In this document: positions 598 to 48,267 of the stretch, piece by piece
Numbering within the stretch: position 1 is the first letter of the stretch
Layout of the letters: each line of letters opens with the position of its first letter
From: Oopsacas minuta
Lineage: Eukaryota; Animalia; Porifera
Assembly: GCA_024704765.1 (NCBI GenBank)
Contig: JAKMXF010000133.1
Span: forward strand, 186,001-250,000
Direction of reading: 5' to 3'
DNA length: 64,000 nucleotides
Position numbers and translations under genes: made by a program
Notes under the pieces: generated by a model
Databases searched by the model: none
Told to the model about the DNA's origin: nothing
What the model saw: the letters and a program-made list of their open reading frames with translations, nothing else

Positions 598-3500
598 TTA
601 CAACATTTGTCGAATCATGTAATTGAGTATACCCCCGTGTTTGAAGTACACAAGCTCTATGTCCGTATCAAACCTCGTTAGAGCTCTGAATTCCTGTCCC
701 GTATCCATAGCAACCTTGATTTCATCACCCGGTTTAAGGTCAGAAGGAATATTAATTGAGAATTGCTCCTTCCCAGTCAGGCCGAGTAGTTCTGCATTTT
801 CCCCCGGCATAAACTCTAAAGGAACTATACCCATTCCGACGAGGTTAGACCGGTGTATCCTTTCGTAGCTCTCTGCTAACACCGCGCGAACACCGAGTAA
901 CATCGGTCCTTTCGCTGCCCAATCCCTCGAGGAACCAGAACCATATTCCTTCCCTGAGATTATTATCAGCTGACGATTTTCAGATTTGTAACGCTCGGCC
1001 GCGTCGAATATATCCATTTCATCACCTGATGGAATGTGGAGTGTTCTAGGACCCGGCTTTGAGACCAGTTTATTGACTAATCTGATATTTGCAAAAGTAC
1101 CTAAGCAAACAACAAGTAAACAACAATATAAATACAGTTAACTCCCTCTTATATTGAAGTAATCATCACCGTCCCTTAAGCTTAGATATAACTAGAGTTG
1201 AGTAAGTAATTATCTTCAAAACAGATTATATAAGAATATTCGGCGGATAAGACATATTCAGTAATTAGTGCATACAAATATTCGTTTCAACATTACCTCT
1301 AGCCATGATAGCATCATTACCCCGTCTAGCACCGTAAGAATTAAACTCTCTAGGTGTAAGCCCCTTTGAGCCTAACAGTCGGGCGGCAGGACTATTCCTA
1401 GCTATTGAGCCAGCAGGGGAGATATGATCCGTTGTCACAGAGTCGCCGAGTAGCAAGAGGCAGTGCGCGTTTGTCACACCTGTCACTGGCGGGAGGTGTT
1501 TACCTATCGTTTGGAAGAATGGTGGTTGTTTGATGTAGGTGGACATTTCATCCCAGGGATAGAGGAGAGAGTCTGGCGCCTAAATATAGCGACAAATTGT
1601 GATAAAGTCGATGGTCCAGATTACACCAATCCAACTCGCCTCTAAATCGTTCCACCTCGAATTGCCCTCTGTAATCTTAGCGTAAACCTCACGGAACATT
1701 CCAGGTAACACGAACGTCCTCTCAGCTGTTTGTATATCATCCCTACTGGGCCATATCTCCCTCAGATAAACAGGAGTACCAGCTGGGTCAAATCCTATTG
1801 GCTCTTTATCAAAGTCAATACAGACAGTACCTGCTAGCGCATACGCGATCACTAGTAGAGGAGAGGCTAGGTAATTTGCCCGTGTTAAGGGGTGAATCCT
1901 TCCCTCAAAATTCCTATATTTAATTGATTATTAACAACTGTTAGTTGGAAATTTGTGTCAGAGCTCCACCTCGCCCGCATCAAGTTCGCCTGTCGCATGA
2001 ATATTCTCATTATTTCACCATTGTAACAGGGACTTTTCCGTATTTAGGAGCAGGTTAAGACCATTTGATTAATTCACGCTTACTTACCTATTACCAGAAA
2101 GGACACCACAGGTAACCAAATCTCCTTTCTCAATGGCATCGGCTACTTCATCAGAAAGTGGTCCGCTATTTCCTATACACGTCATACACCCGTATCCAAC
2201 CAGGTTAAACCCTAGCTCCTCCAGATATGGGACGACACCTCCCTCTCGTAGATAATAGGTCACTACACCAGACCCCGGGGATAAACTTGTTTTGATGTAA
2301 GGTAACACTTTAAGACCTCTCTCTACAGCATTCTTGGCTAGCAGTCCTGCTCCTAGCATCACTGATGGGTTACTGGTATTTGTACAGGATGTTATGGCGC
2401 CTATTACAACAGACCCGTGTGATAAGGAGTACTGTTTCCCTTCGTGTGAGAATTGGACAGAGGTGTCTAGACAGTCAGCTGGTATGTTGTACCCTTTGAA
2501 TCCGATCTACAAGAAATGCATGTATTGTCAATTTTCCGAATGCCCCAACATGACAATAGGAAATGTAAACATTTATAGTTCCAGTTTATAACATATGCAC
2601 ACGTACTTTATTGCTGAGACACTGTAGGAAGTCCTGCTTCATATCAGATACAGATACTCTATCGTGAGGCCTTTTAGGTCCAGACACACAACTGACTACT
2701 GTACTCAGGTCCAGCTGGTGGGTCTCTGAGAATATTGGATCCTAGAGGTGTGAAAATATAATATACAATTCTGTGAGCCCAAAATAAAACACGTGGATCC
2801 CACATGGGTGGATCTATCACATGAGTTATCATATTCCATGGTCAACATTCGCTATCTCGAACAGATTTCTAGGGTTAACTGTAGCTATATTATCCAGCCC
2901 ATTTTGGTCCAATAGGGTGTAAATAGGGCTTTGGAAAATTCTTTGAATAATTAACATTCAAATTTGTGTCTCATAAACTTACTTGTTTAGAATCATTGAA
3001 ATCTCTGAACATTCCAACTGCCCGTAAATACGCTTCAATCCTCGTTACAACACCTCCTTCTCTCCCTGTCTGTTTTAAGTAATCAATACTTTGGAAATCA
3101 ACAGGAAAGTAACCGACAGTTGCTCCATACTCCGGACACATATTAGAAATAGTCGCACGGTCCGCGATGCTTAGAGCGGACACACCTGGTCCATAAAACT
3201 CCACAAACTTTCCTACTACTCCTATTTGTCTGAGATTACGCGTTACAGTTAGTACAACGTCTGTACTTGTTGTTAAGGGCCCTAGTTGTCCAATTAGCTG
3301 GTAGCCAACAACTCTAAAATAAACAAATATGTTTGTTATATTTTGACATACATAATAACAAAAATAGGAGTTTAGCCCCTTCGCCCCCCTCTGCCAATAG
3401 TGCCAAACACCTCCACTAATTGGTTCCAAATACCATAAGGATATTTAAGAAGAGATAACTTGTAAGGTAACCTCAATAAATCACTCCCATAGGATATGCG

Positions 3501-4941
3501 TTAATTCATTTCCTTTAATCTGAAAGGGTACACCGATTAGCACCCCTGACCAATTACCTATGAATCACAGTCTACTCCCCTTATATCGAAGCTCAAGGGA
3601 CCGTGATGATTACTTCGACATGACCGGTCAAATTATGTTACTTTGACGGTTTGGGACCATATTTGTATAATTTCACACCTCGATATAACCGGGCATTTCA
3701 ATATATTCGTGTTAGATACAAGGGGAGGTGATTGTAGATACATAAGAGAATACTTACTTAGGAAGAACCATGCTGATGGACTGTCCAAGCATGACAGCTT
3801 CTGCCTCAATTCCTCCTACACCCCATCCCACTACACCCAGCCCATTAATCATTGTAGTATGAGAATCTGTACCCACTAGACTGTCAGGATACAAGATCTC
3901 CTTGTCACCTTTGAGAGGTTTAGAGAAGACAACTCTAGCTAGAAATTCTAGATTAACCTGATGGACTATTCCAGAACCAGGTGGGACTATTAACATATTT
4001 TGGAAAGCACGTGCGCCCCATTTAAGGAACTGAAACCTCTCTCTGTTCCTCTCAAACTCGATTTCTTGGTTCTTCTCCAGAGCGCCCTTCCCTGAGAAAT
4101 CCACCTAAGTGAATTAAAATATTTGAGACAGTATTTGGTTACTAAGCAAATTATAATTCGTATACACTATAACATACATATCAACGGATCACTTAACACC
4201 TCGCTAATTACCTGTACAGAGTGATCTATAACCAGATCCGCTGGACAGATGGGGTTAATTCTAGCAGGTTCGCCCCCTAGCCTCTTGACAGCGTCCCTCA
4301 TGCTAGCGAAATCAACGACAGCCGGGACACCTGTAAAATCCTGTAGTAGTACTCTACTCGGTTTGAAGGGTATCTCTACTGGTGGTCCTGTGTGTCGCTT
4401 CTCCCAGTCTAAGATTATGTCCACATCTCTTGATCTAACCTGTCAAAATAAATAGCATACTCTGCTTAATAATGCTACCAGCTAATCGGGTCACTTGTCC
4501 AGAAACAGAACCATATAAATAGTGTCAATTACTCGTGCTAACACCTTTACTCTCGACGTGGCTATATTTCAGTTTAGCAAAGAAATTCAAATCGTATGTA
4601 AATAATCTTGTAAGACATTTGAAAGTGTCAGACTCGAACTCCACGTCCCTGTTTACCCCTAATTAGCAGGCGGAAGCTAACTAAGACACTTCAATTTTCA
4701 CCAAAAGTTGTGAAAATATGATTAATCATGTGATAAATTAGTGTACAACAACAAAACAACAAACCTCGAATTCATCACAATTTCTAATAGCAGCTTCTAA
4801 CAATACTCGTATTGAGTAAGGGAGGTTAGAATATCTGGGATCTGACAACTTCAGAGGGTTGTAAAAGTGGCATTTTTCGCACCCTGGAGTGTCGAGTGAA
4901 TCTAATAATTTGTCGAATGGGTTGACAGAGCTAGCTGCCAT
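598..4941 (-). CDS. ACO1: Cytosolic aconitate hydratase / iron regulatory protein 1, multi-exon (approx. exons 4941-4764, 4440-4212, 4104-3760, 3316-2980, 2745-2604, 2507-2087, 1905-1640, 1579-1288, 1100-598)
   Basis: Motifs [94 protein letters not shown] and YFKHGGIL occur in IRP1 order. Canonical intron boundaries were read, except one GC-AG intron. Confidence 0.96.
1133..1204. mobile_element. MITE family 1, short copy in an ACO1 intron
   Basis: TA-CAGTTAACTC...GAGTTGAG-TA termini; shares the core GTCCCTT(A/G)AGCTT(A/C)GATATAAC with other copies. Confidence 0.7.
3568..3736. mobile_element. MITE family 1 copy in an ACO1 intron, opposite orientation
   Basis: CAGTCTACTCCCC...GGGGAGGTGATTGTA termini; core GAAGCTCAAGGGACCGTGATGATTACTTCGA also occurs at about 49437. 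Confidence 0.8.
4452..4555 (-). mobile_element. Partial MITE family 3 copy in ACO1 intron 1
   Basis: Matches the reverse complement of 13978-14155 (ACTCTGCTTAAT...CCAGAAACAGAACCATA(T/C)AAATAGTGT...AACACCTTTA). Confidence 0.7.
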
Positions 4942-5085
4942 TTCTAAACAAACAACAACAACAAGTATAACACATTCAATTATTCAAAACATAAACAAAT
5001 AAGTAAACAAATAATAATGAAGTGAAAAGTTTGAAAAATAAAAATAGTAAAAATGCGATAATTCAATTAGTGATAATGGTAACTG

Positions 5086-5840
5086 TTAAATATTTATTAT
5101 CCAGGTGTCAGTACCAGCTTCCGGTACAACTAGAGTGCATCTCCAAGTTCCTAACTTCACATTCTGGCGGGCAGTTTGTGTTGTCATGTCGGATAGAGTT
5201 AGAAAGTTTACTGAATCTAATCTGACAGTAATTTGTAACAGTTCTCTAGCTGAGTCGGGTCTGTTTGATATGATTTTGTGCTCAGCGCTCAGAATTGTGT
5301 CCGCTTCTTCTGTTGGGAAGAACTCCTTGAGGACATCTATGATTTGGAAGGTGTCAGGTGGCACGGGGACCTGGTTACCATAGGTGTTGAGTGATTTATC
5401 GGGACTGATTAAGAAATCTTCGAAACAGTTGGATGATATAGCATTTTGACAAGAGGTACCGGACCAGCATGAATTACAGTCACAGGTCCCATTTATTCTA
5501 CTGCATCCGTTGCCTTGGTTACACATGCAACTAAATGTAAACAAAATTTGTAAACAAAGGTGAGATATACACTCAAGATAAAATCTGATTGGTCAATAAC
5601 TAACCTTTGTAAACATCCATGTCCGTATTTTCCAGGTTCACATTCCACACAAGAAGACCCGTTGCTATGGAGATACCATCCAGGATTGCAGGAGCAAACA
5701 GCTGTTCCGTTTTCTAAGCTACAGAGTTGGTCACAAGGAATTTGTCTGTTGTCACAAATATTTGTTGTGTTCAGTTGAATTGACAAAGTTTGTGACACAA
5801 ATAGAAGTGAAAATGTCAACAACAATAAGTTTGTATACAT
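5086..5840 (-). CDS. Secreted EGF/laminin-EGF-like protein, two exons (5840-5605, 5530-5086)
   Basis: Hydrophobic N-terminal signal; C-x-C-x2-G-W EGF motif; CEPGKYGHGC-x2-SCMCNQGNGCSRINGTCDC MEGF-type repeat. The GT-AG intron 5604-5531 joins the frames. Confidence 0.75.
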
Positions 5841-6077
5841 TTATCTGTTAGAATGCTTGTTTGTAGATTTATAGGGAATATTTGTTTGTTTATTGCTAAG
5901 AAACATAAACAAACAATTTGTGATTAGTAAATATTTGTGTTTTCATCGCTAGGAAATGATAAACAAACAAACAAAATGGAAATGATAAGGTGTCATAATA
6001 TCCAAATTAAGATCGCATCTCAAACTGCAAAATGCTAATTTTGTAACTAACAGAGAAGTAAACAAGTAAACAAACAA

Positions 6078-8333
6078 CTAAACTATGCAAGTGAGGAGTT
6101 GAGCACGTTTATCGCTTGTTTTGAAACTTCCCCTAACGAAATTACGAATCTCACTGACTTTAAAATTTAGACCCAGAGGGCCTATCCCGTCTCCCCATCT
6201 TTCCTTTATTTGTTTCAAGCTAGCGTCCAATAGGATTATCAGCTCGTTAAACCGGATCCATTCTTCACATACCTCTCTCAATATTTCAGTTTCAGTATCA
6301 GTTTCAGTTTCAAGATGGAATAATGGTTTACAACGGTTGCTTAGCAACGAGAAAATATTTGCTGCTTGACTAGCGTCTTTTGCAGAGATATCAGTGAGTT
6401 GGAAAACAGAGTTTATACAAATTACAAAAATGGTGTCCAAGAGGATGCCAATTGTACCCCTAAGGATGTGGAGGGGTAACACGTCCTTCCATGCCCTGCT
6501 CAGCTGATCAAGGTGTGAAATTAATGATATAAAACTCTTCTGGACCAGTTCCCCTTTGTCACCATCCAAACCTGAAATTGAGTTTTGTAAAACCGCGATA
6601 AATTCCTTTGCTTCGAGTTTTTGTTTGTTTAGCATTTCTAGCCAAAGCTCTTCACCCAAATTCCTAATCACCGGAATGAAATCTATGAAAGTGCATATTT
6701 CAGTATTGAGTGGTTCCGGCATGTGGGGACGAAATTCGAACCCAAGGGTCACTAAATGGTGGCTCACAAACATACAATTATTGTAGAAAACAGCTGTGCT
6801 TCTGACCACATTATTTATCTGTGATTTATGGTAGAAAGGTGTGAAACTTAGGAACATCTGTAACATGTAACGAATTGTCTTAACAACATCAAAAGCATGT
6901 TGTATTTCATTTTGTGTCGCTTCAGCCATCAAATCGCGACAATTCTCGATAAATTCTATGGCGAATATTGACACCTGGCACGCGGGGAAAATGAATAAAT
7001 TTTCGTCTAAATAGCTCAACTCTGATTGGGTGAGAGGGTGATTGGATAAGTGTATGTGTGACTGTAGGTTTGCTTCGGACATATTTTTGGGGAAAAAATT
7101 CGTAGATTTTTGCTCGTTTATTTGAATGCTTACAAGTTCGGTTAGGGAAATGTCAGATTTCAAAAGTGTCCGTGTGTTGTCAAGGATTATGGCTTGTCTC
7201 TTCTCTCTGAATGATGTAACAAGTTTCTTAATTAAATTAGCAAACACCTTTTGATCTTCTGTAATTATACCAAATGATACCAAATCTTCTTCTAACTTCA
7301 ACCAATCAGATTTTAGAGATTCGCTCATTTCAGGTTCCAAAAGTTGACTCTCGAACCCCTGAATAATTGGCGCCCAAACCACAAAGCCCAATTTTTGCAA
7401 ACATTCCTTTCCAAGCTTAAAAGGTGTGAAAAGTCGCGACACAATTTTGAAAATGTTTGTCAGGAATTTTGGGACTTTTTCAGAATTATTAAATCCGTTT
7501 TGATGAATAAAACTTATTTTATCTTCCAAACCGAAATCATTCACGACAAGTGAGATAGTTCTTATTCTAAAAATAGGCTCTATAAGAAACTGCAAGTAAA
7601 GGTGTGAAAACTGTCTAAACATTTCGGAGAATATTTTCAGATCAGACAACATCAAACAAATCTCTTCAAAATTATAACTTTCAAAAATTGGACATAAAAT
7701 TACTTCCACAGTTATTGCGTCATCGAATTTTACAATATTGTTCACACCTTTCATTCTAACAACTTCGAACCATATATTCCTGATTGTGTCACGAATTAGT
7801 TCCATATTCAGTTCGTATTCCCTACGAATATGAACTGATAAATGTTCTGGAATTCTACCACCGAACACTTTCAGTTGTTCGCCAGCTTTAATTCCATTCG
7901 CGACTGCTTCAATATAACACCTCGCTTGCGTAGCAATGATACTGTCACGATGGAATTCTTGGAATAATATTAATCCATCAACAGTTGTGAGTAAAGTTTC
8001 AATTCGCTTAATTTCAGTTTCAATTTGGTTTTTCTTCGAATTAAGGTCGTAGGTGTTTCTACTATTTTCAATCTTTCGATTTGATTCATTTTTCAAATCT
8101 GTCAAATCAGTATTTATCTTTTGTAAGTCAATTAGTATAAGACTTGTCACGTCTTTACGCGCGTAATAGCGCTCAATTAACTCTGAGAGTTGGAACATAT
8201 TTTCTTCAAAACACTCTTTAACCATCTGAATATGTCTATCTATCTCTTGAGCTACACAGGGTATCACACGACTCATTAGCTCTGATACTAAACTAGGTTC
8301 ATGCGACACATTAGCGACACCTGATTCTGCCAT
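6078..8333 (-). CDS. ZW10: Centromere/kinetochore protein ZW10, intronless
   Basis: 751 aa; C-terminal FIFPACQVS, AVFYNNCMFVSHHL, WIRFNELIILLDASLKQIKERW and EIRNFVRGSF match ZW10 as recalled. Confidence 0.88.
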   Translation of the reverse strand: MAESGVANVSHEPSLVSELMSRVIPCVAQEIDRHIQMVKECFEENMFQLSELIERYYARKDVTSLILIDLQKINTDLTDLKNESNRKIENSRNTYDLNSKKNQIETEIKRIETLLTTVDGLILFQEFHRDSIIATQARCYIEAVANGIKAGEQLKVFGGRIPEHLSVHIRREYELNMELIRDTIRNIWFEVVRMKGVNNIVKFDDAITVEVILCPIFESYNFEEICLMLSDLKIFSEMFRQFSHLYLQFLIEPIFRIRTISLVVNDFGLEDKISFIHQNGFNNSEKVPKFLTNIFKIVSRLFTPFKLGKECLQKLGFVVWAPIIQGFESQLLEPEMSESLKSDWLKLEEDLVSFGIITEDQKVFANLIKKLVTSFREKRQAIILDNTRTLLKSDISLTELVSIQINEQKSTNFFPKNMSEANLQSHIHLSNHPLTQSELSYLDENLFIFPACQVSIFAIEFIENCRDLMAEATQNEIQHAFDVVKTIRYMLQMFLSFTPFYHKSQINNVVRSTAVFYNNCMFVSHHLVTLGFEFRPHMPEPLNTEICTFIDFIPVIRNLGEELWLEMLNKQKLEAKEFIAVLQNSISGLDGDKGELVQKSFISLISHLDQLSRAWKDVLPLHILRGTIGILLDTIFVICINSVFQLTDISAKDASQAANIFSLLSNRCKPLFHLETETDTETEILREVCEEWIRFNELIILLDASLKQIKERWGDGIGPLGLNFKVSEIRNFVRGSFKTSDKRAQLLTCIV

Positions 8334-8484
8334 TTAGCTAATATGTATATGCAAAATCTCATATGTAAATAGCTAAAATAAACAACAATAAACACGCATT
8401 AATAAATAATGAAAATACTCGAATAAATTCTACAAATATACAAATGTGTTTACTTCGAGAAAAAGTAAACAAACACCCACCTAA

Positions 8485-10231
8485 CTATTTACTCACTTTA
8501 CACGGTTTGACATTAGCACTAGGGAATACAATAAACCCATATTGCCTAGCTGGTAACTTAATTAAGTTAGAAGCAGGCTTAATATCAGGTGTTAGTTCTG
8601 GTAAGATTGTATTATTCGTGAGTGATAGAATGTCTCCATTTAATAAAATAACTTTACTCGACAGGTCAGGGTCAGGGGAGGACAATAAGTACCAATATTG
8701 TGGTGATACCTTCATCGGATCATTTCTAATCTCAATTTCCTGTCCGCTCACAGCAAGATTCATTAAATAAATGACAACTGAGCCATTTTTGGTCCCGTTT
8801 TGGCAATGTGCATATATCCTCACCTTCCTCTCACGAGATGTACTGCCAGTGACACTCAAAACTTTGCTACCAACTAACCTCCGATACAATAAAGTAATCC
8901 AATAAGCAGGAGTAGGATTAACTGTTGATCGATCAGGTGTTAGTTCCAATAACGATGAGTATTTAGTCCCAAATAGAGAATTTTTGAAGTAGATAGAATG
9001 TTTGAGGTATGCAGCTATCCCTAATGAGTCTAGATACATAAATCCTTGCAGGAAGGTGTCTGATATTCCCCCTGCACCATCTCCCGTGTAGTCTGCCACT
9101 GAGCCTAAAATTAGAGTTGTATTTTTTTGATAGGTTTGTGTCCAATCAGCTGCTTGAGTAGCTCTATCTAGAAGTGTTATATTGGTAAATAAGTAAATAA
9201 CAAGGTGTGAGAATTGGAGACTAAATGTGTCTACCGAACTAGTAATAAACAGCCAAATCGATTATAGGAGTATTTATGAACCTATAAACAAATAGAAATG
9301 TATGACAAACAAGTAAACAACAAACAAACAAACAAACAAACAAACAAACAAACAAACAAACAAACAAACAAACAAACAAACAAACAAACAAACAAACAAC
9401 AAACCTAAAAACTTGTCAAGCACTAATGGGTCATACGAGTATACAGGATCTGCTATATCAGCTTGATCATAGAAGTGATGATACGTTACTCCATCAAGGA
9501 CCCCAGTAGGAGGCATCGACTTTAAAACATTCAAGAAATACCCCGAATAGAGAGGCGAAGCGACATCAGGACCCCAGAGGAAAGATCTCTGTGTGAAGTT
9601 CACTTTATCGATAGTTTTACGGGCTAAAGTGAAGTCTGTCACTATCTATAAGGTGATAAAATATGAATATAGCGTCACAGAATATGAGGAAATATACATA
9701 TACCTGTGATTCATTGACCGCATACCCCTGTGCGAAATACAAATCTGGTTCATTGCCGAGCTCAAAATGGACGCGACACTTTCCGCCCAATTTAAGAATA
9801 TAATTCATTAACACTTCAGCATTCGTCGGATTCCATAAGTTCCCCTCTCTTAGCAGTAAATTCAAGCCGAAAGTGAGATTCAGTCTAAAATTCTGAACCA
9901 AAATGCAAAAGTCTTGGAAGGTCTTTGAAGAAAAGGTGTTATCTTCAAATCTATTATTAGTATCACCCTCTTTGAATGTCATATGGTCCCCTTGTGTACC
10001 TCCTATGCGGACCCAAGCTGGGGAAATGGCGCGCATTAAGGTGTTAAAACGTGTATCATGTATAAGAGCATCACTTTTCCAATTTGGCAAAACTTTAGCA
10101 TCAATAACGTAACTCAGATAGAGTGGATCAGTTACAAAAGCGAGGGTATCATTGTTGATGGAAAGGAATGTGATATTTTGTGCGTAAACAAATGTTGTGT
10201 AAACAAGGAATAGGATACACACAATATGCAT
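8485..10231 (-). CDS. HPSE: Heparanase-like GH79 protein, 3 exons (10231-9704, 9645-9405, 9167-8485; 483 aa); catalytic nucleophile absent
   Basis: Signal peptide, AWVRIGGT, FELGNEPD (acid/base), SDTFLQGFMYLDSLG, PTPAYWITLLYRRLVGSKVL and RIYAHC. Exon lengths sum to 1452 nt in frame. Confidence 0.9.
9321..9397. repeat. (CAAA)n microsatellite, (TTTG)n on the sense strand, just after the 5' splice site of HPSE intron 2
   Basis: About 19 perfect units read directly. Confidence 0.95.
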
Positions 10232-10332: not shown

Positions 10333-12534
10333 TTAATACTTAGTTTTGGCGCCTTTATCCTGTCCTCCTGTCCCCCTCCTGCCCCCATAGTACCCAGCGT
10401 TATCCCAGTGATGCTGTTCCCTCCCAGCAGACCCCTTCTTCCTTGTGTGATGCCCTCTCTGTTCATGTTTGTCCCCTCTGGTAGCTTCTCTTGTATAAGC
10501 ATTCTGATGCTGATGGTGTTGGTAACTAAGATGAATAGGAAATGTGAATAATAATATATAATCTGTCCTGCCAACTGTCTAGGGTGGGTTTGAGGATAAA
10601 TTAGACCCCAAGGGTGAAGATAGGGATTCATATATCATGAGAAATTTTAGGGGTAATGCCATGTACCATTAGGTGCTTAAAATATGATAAACTAACCCTC
10701 TGTTATCAGGTTTTCTATTGACAAACTGTGGGGCATGAACCGGTTGTATTGGTTCTACCTCATCCTCATCAGACCCCTGTTGGAGATCAGTATGATAAGT
10801 ATATCTGTTAGAGTACATTCCTTTAGGATTTAAGCGCTCAATACACTCTGTATCTTCCTTATCAACACCTACGTCACATGGAATGTCATCATATGTATCA
10901 TCATACTCATCGTCATATTCTAATTCCATATTAGCTAACTTTAAAGTGGCGTCACTCAGATCCCGATTATTAAGGAAATCTCTTCCGTCACAAAATCGAT
11001 CCTTCTTTCCTCTATGAATAAGACTGGTGTCTATATCATCCCTTGTGAATATGTCAAATTTGTCACCTGTGAAAATATTCCTCCGTTGTGACACTAATTC
11101 CAGTGGTTTTGGAACTAACACCTCTTTAATTCTGGCAGTTGGTGGTATCTCAATAGTTGGTATTCTTTCGAATAGAGTGTTGATTGCATGCGGAACATTC
11201 AAATTGTGTAATCTCAAAACTTCTCTAATACTCGCAGTATCTACATCAGGAAGGATAGCTTGAATTGAAACTATAGCTTCTTCTAGTTCTGGTTCTGGTT
11301 TTGGTTCCGATTTAGGCTCATCTGAACTGAGCGGTTCGGTCAAATACCCGAATTGGATAGCATCTATAATACCGGAATCTTTCATGCGAGAGAATTCGGT
11401 TTTCAGGTCAAAAATCTTTAAATATTCACTTAACAGATGTTTGGTTCCAATTAGGATATTACAAATAGTGAGAAAATCTTCAAGTGGCGCCTGAATATTC
11501 TCCAAAACGAGAGGTGTTACTTGGAATTTCTTAAAATAGCAATTCTCAAAGATATAAGAGAATATTTTACAGAAATTAAACTTAGTCTTTCTCAAACTAC
11601 TTTTGATAAATTCCTGTTTGTCACATAGTTTGTGTTTGTATAGCAACCACAATTGTACAATTCCTGGCAGAAACAATTCATAAAATGTGACGAAGTGGTT
11701 CATGAACAAAGGTGTGAAACACTGACTTGCAGACGGACAAGTGACGAAAAAACTCTCCAAATTAGTAAAAATATCCTCCACAAATAGGATTATTTCGTAA
11801 AATCTGTCAAAACTTAATTGTTTAGTTGGATTATCTCCCAAACGTGCCAATTTTCTGTCCTCATCTCCAAGGTGTAACTTACAGCCCATCTCCTCGCTGA
11901 TTTTAGACAACATTGAAAGAGTCGTCCGAATCATTTCTTGAATATCGTAAAAATACTTTTTCTGTTTACGGAAAATTCCCTCTAACATTTCTCCCAACAG
12001 ATTTCTGTTTGAACTAAAAATCTGACACAAATCGAGTATTTTCGGTAAATCAAACAGATAATTATCATAAAGCAAATCAGCAAAGGCCGTTGCACTGAAA
12101 TCAGGATAAGTCCGATTTTTCGTGTATTGTGCCTCTCTATTCGTCCCCATTCGGAGGAATACTTTGAACATTACTTCAAGGTAGGACTGAAAGACCTCGT
12201 GACCCAAAAGCTCTGGGGAGTCCTCTATAATATCAGGGGTAATCTTCAAAAATGAATCGAGTAAAATATGGAGTTTTGGATCATAAATGACGTGTGACCA
12301 AAATATGTGTAAAGGAAGTCGAAGTAAGGTGATGACGTCATCACGGAGGGCGTGTAGGGAGCGTAACCATAAGTCTTGGTCGTCGTGTAGGAGAGCAGGA
12401 GGGTATTTCCAGTAGGGAAAGAAATCTATATCTAACAGCCATTTCTCATGGAGAGAGGGTATTTCCTCAATCTCGCTTGTAATAGGATTCGTATAAGAAA
12501 TTAAAATACTTTCAAGACCAGATTCTTTCTCCAT
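10333..12534 (-). CDS. ASCC2: Activating signal cointegrator 1 complex subunit 2 (CUE domain), two exons (12534-10696, ~10534-10333)
   Basis: LLRLPLHIFWSHVIYD, LFDLPKILDLCQIF, CUE-like SIQAILPDVDTASIREVLRLHNLNVPHAINTLF, RRNIFTGDKFD and YDDEYDDTYD. A phase-2 GT-AG intron gives an R/G-rich tail. First ATG (MEKESG) is at 12534. Confidence 0.9.
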
Positions 12535-13239
12535 AGAAATTGCTAATATTTTCCTGATTAAAATAATACTAACGGGTAAGTATCCTAGAATATCTTGCAA
12601 TATTCCAGAAATGCTCGCTCTGCATTACAATATATATCAAGAACAAGCTGCAGAGTTCGAAATGATCGCTGAATTACGTATATGTTACATAGATGGTTAG
12701 AGACCATATTTGTGCTATTTAAGACTTTGATGTAAGCGGGTATCTCCATATATCCGTGTTCGCCTAACGGGAGTTGAGTGTATTTGATTATTCCTAATAA
12801 GTAATAACACCTTGTATGTATTATATTGATAGTAAGGGACTGTAGGTTTTGTATTATACCTCATGTCTCCATTGGACAGCAAGTTACTATTTGCATTCAT
12901 AACTTGTATCGCGAACTATGCTTGTATATATTTAAGAATATTATCAGAATTCGGTAAGTCCGCTATTCATGATTACTGATAGTCGGTTGGAATTATGCCA
13001 TGAGAGACTGAGCCCCCTGGGTCAAATGGAAGTTTGACCTATTTAACACCTCCTCAAATGCTACGCGTGTGCTCAATAAATCTACAATCCTCACTCACAT
13101 ATGTTCACTCAACCTAAAACTGCCATATAGATACAATACGAATTCATAGCAATATTATACAACCAAACTGAATGAGTTTAGCTCTACTATAGTCTAATAA
13201 ATATACACAATATATTTTGTATTATTTGAAAGGTGGGAT

Positions 13240-13512
13240 ATGGTATGATTTTCGTGTATAGTGATTCCTCTCCTTTTCTGGATTTGGAAATCACTGATCC
13301 CTAAGTTAAGGGAAAAAATACCTGCTTTAGTTGACAGGTTTTTCCCCAAAATGTCAATCGCAGAGAGAGCAGAATTCGACCCCAATTCAATATCTTGTCC
13401 ATTAGCTGGACTGTTTCCGAGCCGAGCGTTTGATGACGAGGATTTAGTTGAACCAGATGAAGACAGAGGTGAGGTGAATAGCCCTGAAGGTGTGAAAGTA
13501 AAGGAGGATTAA
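13240..13512 (+). CDS. C18orf32: C18orf32/UPF0729-family small membrane protein with an in-frame TGA at codon 3 (13246-13248), predicted selenocysteine; 90 aa
   Basis: ATG GTA TGA TTT TCG TGT ATA GTG ATT CCT CTC CTT TTC TGG = MV(U)FSCIVIPLLFW, gap-free against recalled human MVCIPCIVIPVLLW. Ends in KVKED (human KKKD). SECIS downstream. Confidence 0.9.
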
Positions 13513-13530
13513 CTGAGAGAGTAAAGTGGC

Positions 13531-13595
13531 GCAATCTAACACGTGACGATTCGTATGGAAACTCGATTGAGTGATATGAATCTGATATTTATTGT
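13531..13595 (+). promoter_or_regulatory. Eukaryotic type-II SECIS element in the 3'UTR
   Basis: GTGA at 13543-46, AAA 12 nt later (13559-61), mini-stem CTC/GAG, helix II GATTCGTAT/ATATGAATC, 3' core TGAT at 13583-86, helix I GCAAT/ATTGT. Confidence 0.9.
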
Positions 13596-13977
13596 TTACG
13601 TCATTGCTTACTTTACTGTTAATTGAATTAGAATTAAGTGTTATAGTAAATATTTGTGATACATGCATAGCAACCAAGTATGAGACGTATTTCACCGGGA
13701 TATTGGGTTTTTGGCGGGGAAATATAAATTTTGAGCGGGATACAGTAACCTTTGGAAAATTTTCTAAATTTAACAAAAAAGCTAATTGTATAGAAAAACG
13801 CGGGATAATGACAACTTTCTGAGTGGGGATTATGGTTTTTGGCGGGAGGAGAATAGACATCACTGCTTTTAGGCGGGAAAATGTGGAAATATACGCGGGA
13901 TAATAAACTCAAATTGAAGTTTCTCCTATGGTAATAGAAAATAGAAAATAATCTCATTTAGAGTTAATTAAAATAAA

Positions 13978-14155
13978 TACAGTAGACTCCACTTAATAGG
14001 GTCACGTCGGGACCAGACCATTTTGACCCGATTTGTTAAGCGGAATAAAGGTGTTGGCCCGCTTAAACCGGAGTAATTTAACACTATTTGTATGGTTCTG
14101 TTTCTGGCAGAGCGGCAGATTAACCGGGTAGCTCAATTAAGCAGAGTCTACAATA
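13978..14155. mobile_element. MITE family 3 (Tc1/mariner-pogo-like, TA flanks)
   Basis: TA-CAGTAGACTCCACTTAAT...ATTAAGCAGAGTCTACAA-TA terminal inverted repeat; second copy at about 4452. Confidence 0.8.
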
Positions 14156-14923
14156 AATGTGAACTAACCTACTTTACATGTGAGATCAGAGGTTGAGAAA
14201 TCCATCAAATTTATAAGCAACCCATAATGTATCGTAAGTTATCATCAAATTACATAGAATTGTATTCATTAAAATAGACCCATAAGATTATATTCAATAT
14301 CAGATATAAGTAGTTACAATACTTAATTATATTTGCTTTATAAACTTCTACAAACTTTCATATAAAAAAACTTACAGGTAAGTTGGCTTTTATGCCTGGG
14401 TGTCGCTCCGACACCTTATCTTATAAAAATGAGTTTTTGATTATCTCTTGCTTTCTTTATGTATTTACCTTTCTGCTATTTTTCAGTCCCTTATATTTTC
14501 ATCTTATGGTGACGTTAAGAAGTCGTATTATGCCTAATGTGACAACTCCTACTTTACTTTTCGTATTTGATCACAGCGAGATGAAATTAGAAAGGTTAGA
14601 AGGAAGACTTAAGTTCTGTGTTACAGCTATCTAAGGAACGCGGGTGAGCCAAAATGGGAGGATTCTAACAGCTCTTATAGTGAATTACACATGTACCAAT
14701 TGTAGCAGAGCCAACCTTGGATGGCGTAGCGAAATGCGACATTACCTGGCGCAACTTGCACCATCGCAGAAGCATAAACATTCCACAAGGTATCCTAGCA
14801 ACTACAAAAGTGTCAAATTATGATTAATCATAAGATAAGATAATTAACTACAACAATCAAGTCCAATGACACTAAATTCATAAATATATTTACAAACTAA
14901 TTTGTAAAATTATCAGTCAATTG

Positions 14924-17900
14924 TTATTTTAAATTTTTCTCTAAAAAGTGTGCGATCGAATCGTTGAGAAGATTATTCTTAGAAAGAACTTTGATTTCGG
15001 CGGAAGACAGTTCGTCATTAAAATTTGCATGAAACAGACATTTCACTTTTGAAAGAAAAGTCCCCGCAAAAAGCAATTCATTTTTGTTTCTGTCAATTTC
15101 TTGGACATTTAGTTTCTGTCGAAAGAATGTTATAAATTCTGAAATATTCGGAATGCCCGCTGGACTAATCGTCACCATTTTCTTTCGGAACATATGAGAA
15201 GAGGACCATTCATTTTGGAACTCGATAGGTGTTAGGTTAAGAGGTCGCATCAAGTCTCGAGTTGTGATTAGGAGGTTAAAAAATAATCTTTGTTGAGTCT
15301 TCCGTGTGTCTTTGTAACTCAACTCGCCGCTAACTGTTGGGTTCATTGCAGGTGCTGTACACCTGATTTCTAGAGTCTCTGGGTGAGATTCGAACCCCTC
15401 CAAGCCTTCAAGTGTTAAGTGGTTATTTGTGACACTTTCTAGATGTCTCAAATTTGAAGGGAATTGGTATTTGAAGTGAATATCTTGTAATGCATCTTGT
15501 ATCTGATTAGTAATTACTAAAAATAGAACTAGAGTTTCTGGTTTAAAGACTTTCACATACGTCACACGAATATTTACATCTGAAACTAAAAAGTTTTGTT
15601 CATCTTTCGGAAATTCGTTTAGTTCCAGATTCATTTCCGGCCCTTTAGAGGGGGGGTTATAATTAGTCAAAGGAAACGATTCATTTATGAAAGCAAATCC
15701 ACTCTCATTATCGAAGTTAAGTTCTGATAAAACAGATTCTGTTTTAATACCTTTTGGTTCTGGTACTAGTTCCGTATTATCTAGCTCTATTGTTGGGTCT
15801 AACAAAGTATCTGAGAAGAGAGGGGTCTCTGAATTAGGGACCAATAGAGGTGTTACTTCCCGTTCAACAAGTACTGAATTCTGATTCGGTACTTCTGGTT
15901 GAATCAAATTGGTTAACTGAGGCTCGAGGAGATTTTCTATCCCCCCTGTAGGAGTATTTTTCTTGGGCTTGCGTCCTGTCTGGGACAAGACCCCACCGGT
16001 CCCCTGAGGTGCAAGGTGCGCGAATATGGAATTCGCCTCCTTGCGTTTTGGGTCTTCGTGATGCACTGTCGGGTGAGCATTGACTGTTGATATAGTTGTG
16101 TCAGGTTTATAATTGGTGAAATTAGAACTCAATTTTGTTGGTGGAAATTTTTTTGGTTCAAAAGAATTCAATTCTGAGTTCTTTGTTTGATATCCTTTTG
16201 TAGACCACGGACGATTGATGGATTGGTTGGAATGAAATTGTGTCGAACTCCCTTCAGGTGGTTGTGTAGATGGCAGAACTGGCTCAGGCGACACAATTGA
16301 TATAGGTGTGAATTTATTCATCTGCTTAGGCGCGATATTTGATATAGCAGGAGTAGGTAACGCTCTAACAGCTGGTTTGGGTGGAGCTTCGTATGGCTTA
16401 TAATTAATTTCTATTATTTTCTGAGGGGGCTTATCCTCCTTTCGACTATGAGGGGGCTTGTAAGCAGGAGCGCCGGTCCTCTCGGCCTCTCTGGAGAATT
16501 TAGTCAGGAACCCCAGGGTAGAATCTACTCCCATGTCCTCACAGCTCCCATCCAAGGGATGCAAGGTATCAAGTCTATATTTAGAACTTAGCATTCCATT
16601 GTATTCATTCCATCTCTGTTGCGTATCTATGTTAAGAATCAAATTTGATTGGGCGAATAAGGTGTCAATAGAATTTCTAACAAGTTCATCATGGAGAGCT
16701 AACTTGATCACTGATTGGATAATCCAATTTTGAGTAACAGCTGATCGTTTCCCCTCTCTAAAAACTTTTGCGAGTCTTGACGCGATGTCAATATGTGTCA
16801 GATTGGGACACAAATAAACGTATTCAGCTAACACCCAAGCAACAATTCTTATAAGAGAATCTGGAATATTCAAATTAGTATCTGACTCTATAAGAATGTT
16901 ACTAAAAATAGTAACTGCTTGGATACGAAATTCCTTTTCAACACTAGCGTCTCCACTGTCAATTCCTTCAGCTATCAGGCGCATTAAATTGTGCGCTACA
17001 TTATGTGGGACCAGATCACCCGCCAAACGAAATACGCGGGAGACTGTAACTAAAAACCATTCATGGTTCGGCGCGTGTTTCTCAGCTATTTCTGTAATTT
17101 TACGCGCCAAATCACCTCTAATAAACTGATCTGTGACACTTTCTAGATATTCAGTCAGTTTGCTACATATAACCGACACATTCTCAGGACCTGTAATGCG
17201 ACACAATAGTTCTAGAGTTTTCCTCTTTAAAGTGTCATCTGGGTCATCCAAACACCTCATAATTACCTCCTGATGTTCCAATGCATGCTGGGGCTCAACC
17301 TAAATGGTACAATGGAATGTATGAAAGTGTAATCTCTACAAACCGAGTGCTAGGGGAGGCAGAAACATTCTACCCGCTACTGCCCCAATTTCCCGTTTGT
17401 GGGGGTTGTACTAGTGAAAATATCAAAAGTAATATCAGTGAATTTGGTAAAAATAATTGTGAGTAATTTAATTACTATTTCCTAGCAACAAGTAATGTAT
17501 AAAGGAATGCTAGCTATAGAATGCAAACCTGTACTAAAAGAGATAGAGAAGTAATACCAAAATATTGGATATTATTACTCGGAGATGAGAGGAACCTTCC
17601 TACAGCACCGGCGGCTTTCATTATCAGCTCTGTGTCAGGATAAATACAACTTATCGTGCGGACACATTCGAAAATTAGCGCCTTCCCAATTAACTGTGAC
17701 GCCTCCTGATTGGCACGCGCTAAGCAGATATCCAACACTTCATAAATCCGTTTAGAAATACTCAAATCATCTTGTCCAATTATTGACAATATCTGCAACA
17801 TTTTTATCTGTGTCCATGGCAACACAACGGAATGATATTCAAAATCTATTGATACTCTATGTGTAACAATCTAAGGCGTGAAAATATGATAAACACTATA

Positions 17901-34713: not shown

Positions 34714-35335
34714 CGGATTAAGAGTTTATACCGAAATTCTTGGTGTTTATGAGCTGTGTCAGATCAAGTGGGGTTCGGTGTCGGGACAATATTTTCAGAC
34801 CAAGTCTACAGAAAAGGGTGCACTCACAGGGCAAAAGAGATTCGAGTAGCCGGCGAACTTTCGTGCTATTCAATTGTAAAAATAATATACTTGACAGCGC
34901 ATCACAACCTCATGTGGACCCCATAGATGTCCACATGACCTCAAAAATTGTATTGCAGCCTATGGGAAGGTGTCAACGAGTAAAATGGGTTGCACTGACT
35001 TGTAATATTCAAAATTGGTTGAAAGGAATTCCAATTGGAACAATCTCAGAAATATTTGCATCAATCACACAAATCAGCCGAAAGATGGTTAATATTCATC
35101 ACAGATTAATATCGCTATAGCAACTTAAACTATGTGAAGACACATTTATATAAAGCAATGTGGGTTTATAATATGGCATGAGAGTGTTAAACTAGTCTGA
35201 CAAAAGGCGGTACAATTCAATTTTATGGGACGTAAACACAGAATGACAACTTCGTATAAATGCTTAACAAACAAACAACAAAGAAAAGTAGACAATATGG
35301 AATATAAGTGATAGGTGTGAAAGAATAATATGTGA

Positions 35336-48194: not shown

Positions 48195-48267
48195 GCCGGG
48201 ATAGCTCAGTTGGGAGAGCGTTAGACTGAAGATCTAAAGGTCCCTGGTTCGATCCCTGGTCACGGCA
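48195..48267 (+). tRNA. trnF-GAA: tRNA-Phe(GAA) followed by a TTTTT Pol III terminator
   Basis: GCCGGGATAGCTCAGTTGGGAGAGCGTTAGACTGAAGATCTAAAGGTCCCTGGTTCGATCCCTGGTCACGGCA; anticodon at 48228-30. One acceptor-stem and one T-stem mismatch. Confidence 0.9.

Follow-up and report, generated by a model that had tools for sequence, protein, structure and literature searches.

A small gene of the glass sponge Oopsacas minuta carries an in-frame TGA as its third codon, and a hairpin lies close behind its stop codon. The question raised by this locus is whether that hairpin is a SECIS element, the kind of structure that would allow the TGA to be read as selenocysteine (Sec). The window analyzed here is a stretch of 64,000 nucleotides from contig JAKMXF010000133.1, and all positions without another label refer to it. 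The hairpin very probably functions as a eukaryotic SECIS element within the 3'UTR of a small Oopsacas mRNA, and as judged from sequence it supports the reading of the codon-3 UGA as selenocysteine. It is also likely to be the SECIS of an animal selenoprotein family that has not been described before, a DUF4512/UPF0729/C18orf32-like family in which a UxxC motif, with Sec as residue 3, is followed by a membrane helix. The element itself is an ordinary SECIS in kind, and its significance lies in the gene that it serves.

A small gene with TGA as its third codon

The open reading frame occupies positions 13240 to 13512 of the plus strand. It consists of 90 codons followed by a TAA stop, and reads M-V-UGA-F-S-C-I-V-I-P; the TGA at 13246-13248 is the proposed Sec codon. 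A database protein from O. minuta, LOD99_16059 (111 amino acids), is 100% identical, and its gene model splices an upstream exon (12612-12695) onto 13261-13512, just past the TGA. In the RNA-like sequencing run described below, this upstream exon has a depth of about 52 versus more than 100,000 on the ORF, and no joint between the two segments was seen. The first exon of LOD99_16059 is probably an artefact of avoiding the TGA.

Four sequencing runs of one study cover the stretch. Three of these (X1, X3 and X4) are even over 12300-14300, as DNA is. In the fourth run, X2, the word depth is 52 at 12568-13170, 189,165 to 505,354 across 13238-13505 and 125,552 at 13506-13572, and it then drops to 15,039 at 13573-13639, 894 at 13640-13706 and zero across 13707-13907. 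Past the hairpin the values are 11,431 at 13598 and 7,097 at 13607, and the ORF is among the most deeply covered stretches in this run. The genome paper places RNA-seq and DNA-seq libraries in one BioProject (PMC10280926). Given this mixture and the pattern of coverage, X2 is taken as RNA, a judgement made from the coverage alone, as no run is labelled RNA on record. If X2 is indeed RNA, then an abundant transcript would start shortly before the ATG, would appear unspliced (no joint being seen), would include the whole hairpin and would end near 13660-13700. The run was seen as assembled contigs, which cannot give the true 3' end; these contigs stop between 13640 and 13706, and the AGTAAA at 13646-13651 (plus strand), downstream of the hairpin, is a candidate poly(A) signal.

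The DNA on either side of the gene has several features of its own. Six GCGGG[AG] motifs (at 13714, 13735, 13800, 13842, 13873 and 13895) lie within 182 nt in the interval 13700-13900, past the 3' end of the gene, and the whole plus strand of the window contains 19. Several of these motifs are found in T-rich contexts that resemble E2F-type sites (TTTGGCGGGAA). The stricter motif SGCGGGAW is not enriched window-wide, and all three of its matches are in 13700-13900. Word depth in X1, X3 and X4, the DNA-like runs, climbs from about 100-240 to 2,800-9,500 at 13975-14108, and many contigs continue from there into unlike sequence; this segment looks like a short dispersed repeat between the small gene and the AP-4 epsilon gene. 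The neighbouring ORFs (8485-10231, 10669-12600 and 14924-17281, all on the minus strand) are long and uninterrupted. The last of these probably encodes AP-4 epsilon, since Adaptin_N and AP4E_app_platf genes lie beside the small gene at the orthologous loci.

Protein searches and exact look-ups yielded 15 related loci in nine public assemblies. Besides Oopsacas, these loci make up five groups (L001; L003 and L014; L004 and L015; L002, L010, L011 and L013; L005 to L009 and L012), which are called sequence lineages here and not species. AP-4 epsilon or NHL-repeat neighbours of the window are common to several of the related loci, and the order and orientation of the neighbours vary between lineages. 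The sequence ATG-GTA-TGA, followed by [F/L]-S-C-I, is kept in all 15 loci, and the same 273-nt frame is present in L001-L003. Similarity between lineages starts at the ATG. Identity to Oopsacas is 28-50% over the 80 nt before it and 69-78% over the coding sequence. The SECIS stretch, at 65-79%, is about as conserved as the coding sequence. The rest of the 3'UTR is 51-69% identical, and identity is 9-42% in the region 80-160 nt further downstream.

The stretch between the TGA and the next ATG evolves as coding sequence. Substitutions there fall mainly on the third base of codons (for example, 8, 3 and 18 at the first, second and third base), which means that the stretch is translated in this frame. 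In the four codons right after the TGA, the only changes are synonymous (TGT/TGC, ATA/ATT and CTC/CTA) apart from an exchange of F and L. At the first alternative start, most lineages have GTG and L003 has TTG; the post-TGA codons can be served by no in-frame ATG except the one two codons before the TGA. Within the ORF, runs X3 and X4 carry A13308G, a synonymous change of TTA to TTG.

The part of the protein after the TGA resembles DUF4512. The Pfam profile matches this part in all four of the members tested, with a best E of 1.5e-4, which is below the curated cutoff. The three nearest named Atlas clusters are all DUF4512/UPF0729, and the offsets of the Pfam alignments put the UGA two residues before position 4 of the DUF4512 profile. 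A word search and an exhaustive profile search for Cys-containing relatives returned only the same small set of UGA-truncated proteins and no DUF4512 protein; the likeness to DUF4512 therefore comes only from the Pfam offsets and the Atlas neighbours. The gene is a candidate DUF4512/UPF0729-like selenoprotein with Sec at residue 3, and apparently an undescribed one. A full-text literature search found no paper linking DUF4512, UPF0729 or C18orf32 with selenoproteins, and a literature search for a Sec codon at position 3 found nothing relevant. We know of no characterised eukaryotic selenoprotein in which Sec is so near the start codon.

Fold of the hairpin and its match to SECIS models

The whole element, from the outer part of helix I to its 3' partner, spans 13527-13603 of the plus strand, as judged from the free MFE fold, the Rfam SECIS_1 match and an alignment of the orthologues (A4, with 13 distinct rows). 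In the MFE fold, the 5' strand of helix I (13527-13536) pairs with the 3' strand (13594-13603): UGGCG at 13527-13531 is joined to CGUCA at 13599-13603, AA at 13533-13534 to UU at 13596-13597, and C13536 to G13594. The two halves of the core are G-UGA-C at 13543-13547 and UGAU at 13583-13586, and they fit the published SECIS core consensus UGAN/KGAW (PMC3753652), with UGAC at 13544-13547 as the 5' part. Helix II is formed by GATTCGTAT (13548-13556) and ATATGAATC (13574-13582) in nine consecutive pairs, one of them G.U. Above it, an unpaired AAA at 13559-13561 lies 12 nt after the A of the UGA. An apical mini-stem, a type-II feature, occupies 13562-13571, with CUC at 13562-13564, the loop GAUU and GAG at 13569-13571. 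The core is located 30 nt after the TAA and 297 nt after the TGA, and the outer stem begins 14 nt past the stop codon. The bases that an earlier note on this DNA had quoted for helix I, the core, helix II, the AAA and the mini-stem are all in place.

The pairing that the earlier note had drawn for helix I needs revision. It joined GCAAT (13531-13535) to ATTGT (13591-13595), which is possible but has an energy of -8.5 kcal/mol versus -14.1 kcal/mol for the fold with 13527-13531/13599-13603. The latter register is the better one, because of its lower energy and because it is common to the orthologues. RNAfold on 13525-13601 recovered helix II and the mini-stem, and the unconstrained MFE structure of 13527-13604 (-14.1 kcal/mol) is SECIS-shaped with the core open. 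The stability of 13525-13601 is not unusual when its MFE is compared to that of shuffled sequence (z = 0.06), and thermodynamic stability alone is therefore uninformative for this hairpin. Helix I of Oopsacas is weak, with U.U at both pairs (9-69 and 11-67 in the alignment) of the register shared with the orthologues. Runs X3 and X4 carry another allele, in which A13598 is replaced by G, and none of the differences in these runs falls inside 13527-13597. A G at 13598 would pair with C13532 and so close the only gap in helix I, which fits the new register.

The earlier note had proposed a check against the Rfam SECIS models. In E-value mode, SECIS_1 (RF00031) does match, end to end, at 13534-13596 of the plus strand, but the 28.0 bits that it scores are below the Rfam gathering score of 35 (the best orthologue reaches 34.0). 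At gathering thresholds the Rfam search of the whole window reported tRNA only, and no SECIS; the threshold for RF00031 is the curators' cutoff for genome scans and not a biological property. Both strands of the 64-kb window, 128 kb in all, contain no other SECIS match. Since the E of 0.25 for the match counts 4227 families, only about 6e-5 chance matches would be expected for SECIS_1 alone in the window. SECIS_1 is also the sole structured-RNA model that fits the core and the helices together. A SECIS descriptor of our own found this site only, as compared to 0.16 sites expected per window from Markov simulations, and because its thresholds were set after the match had been seen, this gives weak support.

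The Rfam searches also touched other structures. The tRNA gene in the window, at 48195-48267 (plus strand, 62.9 bits), has the anticodon loop CUGAAGA and the anticodon GAA, which corresponds to Phe. Sub-threshold C/D-box snoRNA models (SNORD51 at 33.7 bits, ceN109 at 32.2, SNORD96 at 28.8 and SNORD31 at 25.0) fall on the same 70-nt stretch at 35034-35110 of the minus strand, which may be a real C/D snoRNA. A hairpin at 39393-39467 matches miRNA-precursor models on both strands, far below their thresholds (mir-5014 at 42.1 bits and mir-1277 at 37.0), and is probably a near-perfect inverted repeat. Among the related loci, a long near-perfect hairpin at L013:1-224 matches many plant and animal miRNA-precursor models (MIR2646 at 130.5 bits, below the threshold of 245); it lies upstream of the orthologous gene and probably represents a foldback or MITE-like repeat.

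Conservation of the hairpin and alternative readings

Each of the 15 related loci has a homologous hairpin, the core of which lies 23-30 nt beyond the stop codon. SECIS_1 matches several of these hairpins at the same position after the stop, with scores of 34.0 bits for both L003 and L014, 23.9 for L001 and 20.7 for L015. At an E of 10 or less, the model gave no listing for L004, L002, L010, L013 or L005. The elements that SECIS_1 does not list lack the mini-stem and have tandem U.U mismatches in helix II. Because the model is silent on these type-I-like orthologues, their membership rests on the alignment.

The alignment is most constant where a SECIS would be. Across the 13 distinct rows of A4, the UGA, the AA (A34 and A35, the last two residues of the AAA in Oopsacas) and the GAU of the 3' core are invariant. 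Oopsacas, L003 and L014 have a G before the UGA where the other rows have an A, and the first base of the 3' core is U except in L010, L011 and L013, where it is C. These three copies with CGAU in place of UGAU (L010:1788-1791, L011:742-745 and L013:1789-1792) are from assembly ERZ25069837, and a fourth contig of that assembly, L002, retains UGAU. The copies of the two kinds could be haplotypes, paralogues or the product of mixed species.

The helices are conserved as pairs. With the SECIS structure imposed on A4, 80.4% of the cells pair, versus 27-47% if the 3' partners are displaced by 1-3 columns; for helix II the value is 84.6% across the orthologues. Five pairs have changed on both sides. 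Pairs 9-69 and 11-67, which belong to helix I, have switched from U-A to A-U; the other three (23-55, 24-54 and 28-50) belong to helix II, where pair 23-55 has gone from A-U to G-C and pair 28-50 from U-A to C-G through U.G. RNAalifold, given the alignment alone, predicted helices I and II and left the core columns unpaired. When the other lineages are folded by MFE, counterparts of the outer GGC/GCC stem appear (GGCA/UGCC, GACG/CGUC and GAC/GUC). The covariation across orthologous 3'UTRs that the earlier note had named as a check is thus present, in the form of compensatory double changes at five pairs. For a reading built on sequence comparison, this conservation among orthologues, with its covariation, is the decisive support for a SECIS. 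As there are only about six independent lineages, it amounts to good evidence that is not statistically deep.

The top of the hairpin is less uniform. The mini-stem is present only in Oopsacas, L003, L014 and L001, and its sequence is unchanged there, so that it offers no covariation. The lineages of L004, L015, L002 and L005 have an open A-rich apical loop, and two lineages have tandem U.U in helix II. Within the family, going by the aligned sequences, the element switches between type-II and type-I forms. The earlier description of a textbook type-II SECIS stands for Oopsacas to the extent that the mini-stem is there, but the Rfam score is sub-threshold and the mini-stem occurs in only three of the six lineages.

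SECIS elements and C/D RNAs have cores built on the same kink-turn motif. This shared motif explains why Rfam SNORD30 matches 13539-13590 with 28.8 bits, slightly more than the SECIS_1 score, and SNORD30 also matches L003 (23.9 bits). One might therefore read the hairpin as a small RNA of the C/D-box snoRNA type, whose box C would be GUGACGA and whose box D would be CUGA, and which binds Snu13/15.5K in place of SBP2 and lies behind the gene by chance. Such a reading is extremely unlikely. The SNORD30 score is far below the gathering score of 40 (E of 4.6 in the window run), and SNORD30 is not listed for L001, L002, L004 or L005. The span would be just 52 nt with the boxes 33 nt apart, which leaves no room for C' and D' boxes. 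An rRNA guide would stay fixed, whereas the 9 nt before the CUGA, where the guide would be, are not the same in all lineages and change in concert with the 5' strand; the putative box C is variable too, in its second half (CGA, CGG, CGU and AGA). In addition, an in-frame UGA is conserved upstream of the element at every locus. A C/D-box snoRNA was rejected, there being neither a conserved guide nor C'/D' boxes.

Covariation reveals a selected structure and not which protein binds it, and the remainder of the 3'UTR is itself moderately conserved (51-69%). The hairpin might then be a conserved 3'UTR kink-turn with another role, in mRNA stability, in localisation or as a site for another L7Ae-family protein, and the UGA would simply end a two-codon upstream ORF. 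This is very unlikely, because invariance falls precisely on the UGA, the AA at a distance of 12 nt and the GA, which are the positions of the SECIS consensus. A two-codon upstream ORF also fits poorly with the coding-type evolution of the four codons that separate the TGA from the first alternative start; with the lack of any other in-frame ATG that could serve the post-TGA codons; and with the position of the UGA two residues before DUF4512 profile position 4. Finally, the hairpin could be a chance fold, the gene in front of it being in decay or wrongly assembled. In favour of this are the ease with which AT-rich sequence folds, an MFE that does not surpass that of shuffles and the 0.16 sites per window that the descriptor finds by chance, yet the probability of this reading is close to nil. 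The TGA and the hairpin are kept in six lineages with compensatory changes, which led to its rejection, and the ORF is intact, under coding constraint and deeply covered in the RNA-like run. What the earlier note had proposed, a sense-strand SECIS within the 3'UTR of a UGA-containing gene, agrees with the Rfam fit, with the 15 related loci and with the RNA-like contigs.

Proposed mechanism and comparison with known systems

If the hairpin is a SECIS element, its mode of action can be outlined by analogy with known SECIS elements. The GUGA/UGAU core would form the tandem sheared G.A kink-turn that is recognised by SECIS-binding protein 2 (SBP2), and the 9 bp of helix II would place the unpaired AA at the required distance from this core. 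The complex would then recruit eEFSec and Sec-tRNA(Sec) to a ribosome at the UGA 297 nt upstream. With codon 3 read as selenocysteine, the protein would begin M-V-U-F-S-C, a UxxC motif, and continue into a hydrophobic helix. Both the binding of SBP2 and the actual insertion of Sec would be expected on this analogy. The Oopsacas genome paper lists a predicted selenocysteine tRNA (PMC10280926). The distance from the UGA to the core is greater than the minimum UGA-to-SECIS spacing in experiments, which was 51-111 nt (PMC3753652).

The hairpin provides independent, structure-based evidence for Sec at codon 3, and would make a mis-modelled gene the founder of a candidate new selenoprotein family. 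As the Sec codon would come two codons behind the AUG, the gene would be an unusual case in which to ask how soon after the start of elongation recoding by a SECIS can operate. If the reading is right, the family could reveal whether the machinery of SECIS, SBP2 and eEFSec can act on a ribosome that is just out of initiation. The orthologues also make up a small natural series of SECIS elements, with GUGA or AUGA and UGAU or CGAU in the core, with or without the mini-stem, and with tandem U.U in helix II, and this series could be used in reporters.

Among known structures, the Oopsacas hairpin is most usefully set beside form 2 (type II) of Rfam RF00031, SECIS_1. On all structural features that were compared it qualifies as a eukaryotic SECIS, and it falls short only of the curated Rfam cutoff. 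It has the same helix I, internal loop, UGA/GA kink-turn quartet and 9-bp helix II. Like type II SECIS elements, it has an unpaired AA 12 nt after the UGA and an apical mini-stem, and it is located in a 3'UTR behind an in-frame UGA. It differs from RF00031 in that it scores 28.0 bits, under the 35 of the family, has a short and mismatched helix I and starts 14 nt after the stop codon; and in contrast to type II elements, its orthologues in three lineages lack the mini-stem and resemble type I. The box C/D snoRNAs (SNORD30, RF00088) share the RUGA...CUGA arrangement and its tandem G.A kink-turn. Unlike these RNAs, the hairpin has no conserved guide or C'/D' boxes, and the space between its boxes is taken up by a covarying 9-bp self-paired helix.

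The closest parallel for the core itself comes from another sponge. In the demosponge Amphimedon queenslandica, 12 of 21 SECIS elements are of the form GUGA_AA, which is also found in some green algae (Jiang et al. 2012, PMC3473315). The earlier note had called GUGA the less common variant of the core, and this does not hold in the one sponge selenoproteome surveyed. The Amphimedon elements serve known families (SelK, SelT, SelL, GPx, TR and others), whereas the Oopsacas element serves a DUF4512-like gene that is absent from that list (PMC3473315). What the Oopsacas hairpin shares with the Amphimedon GUGA_AA elements is the G before the UGA quartet, together with the AA motif.
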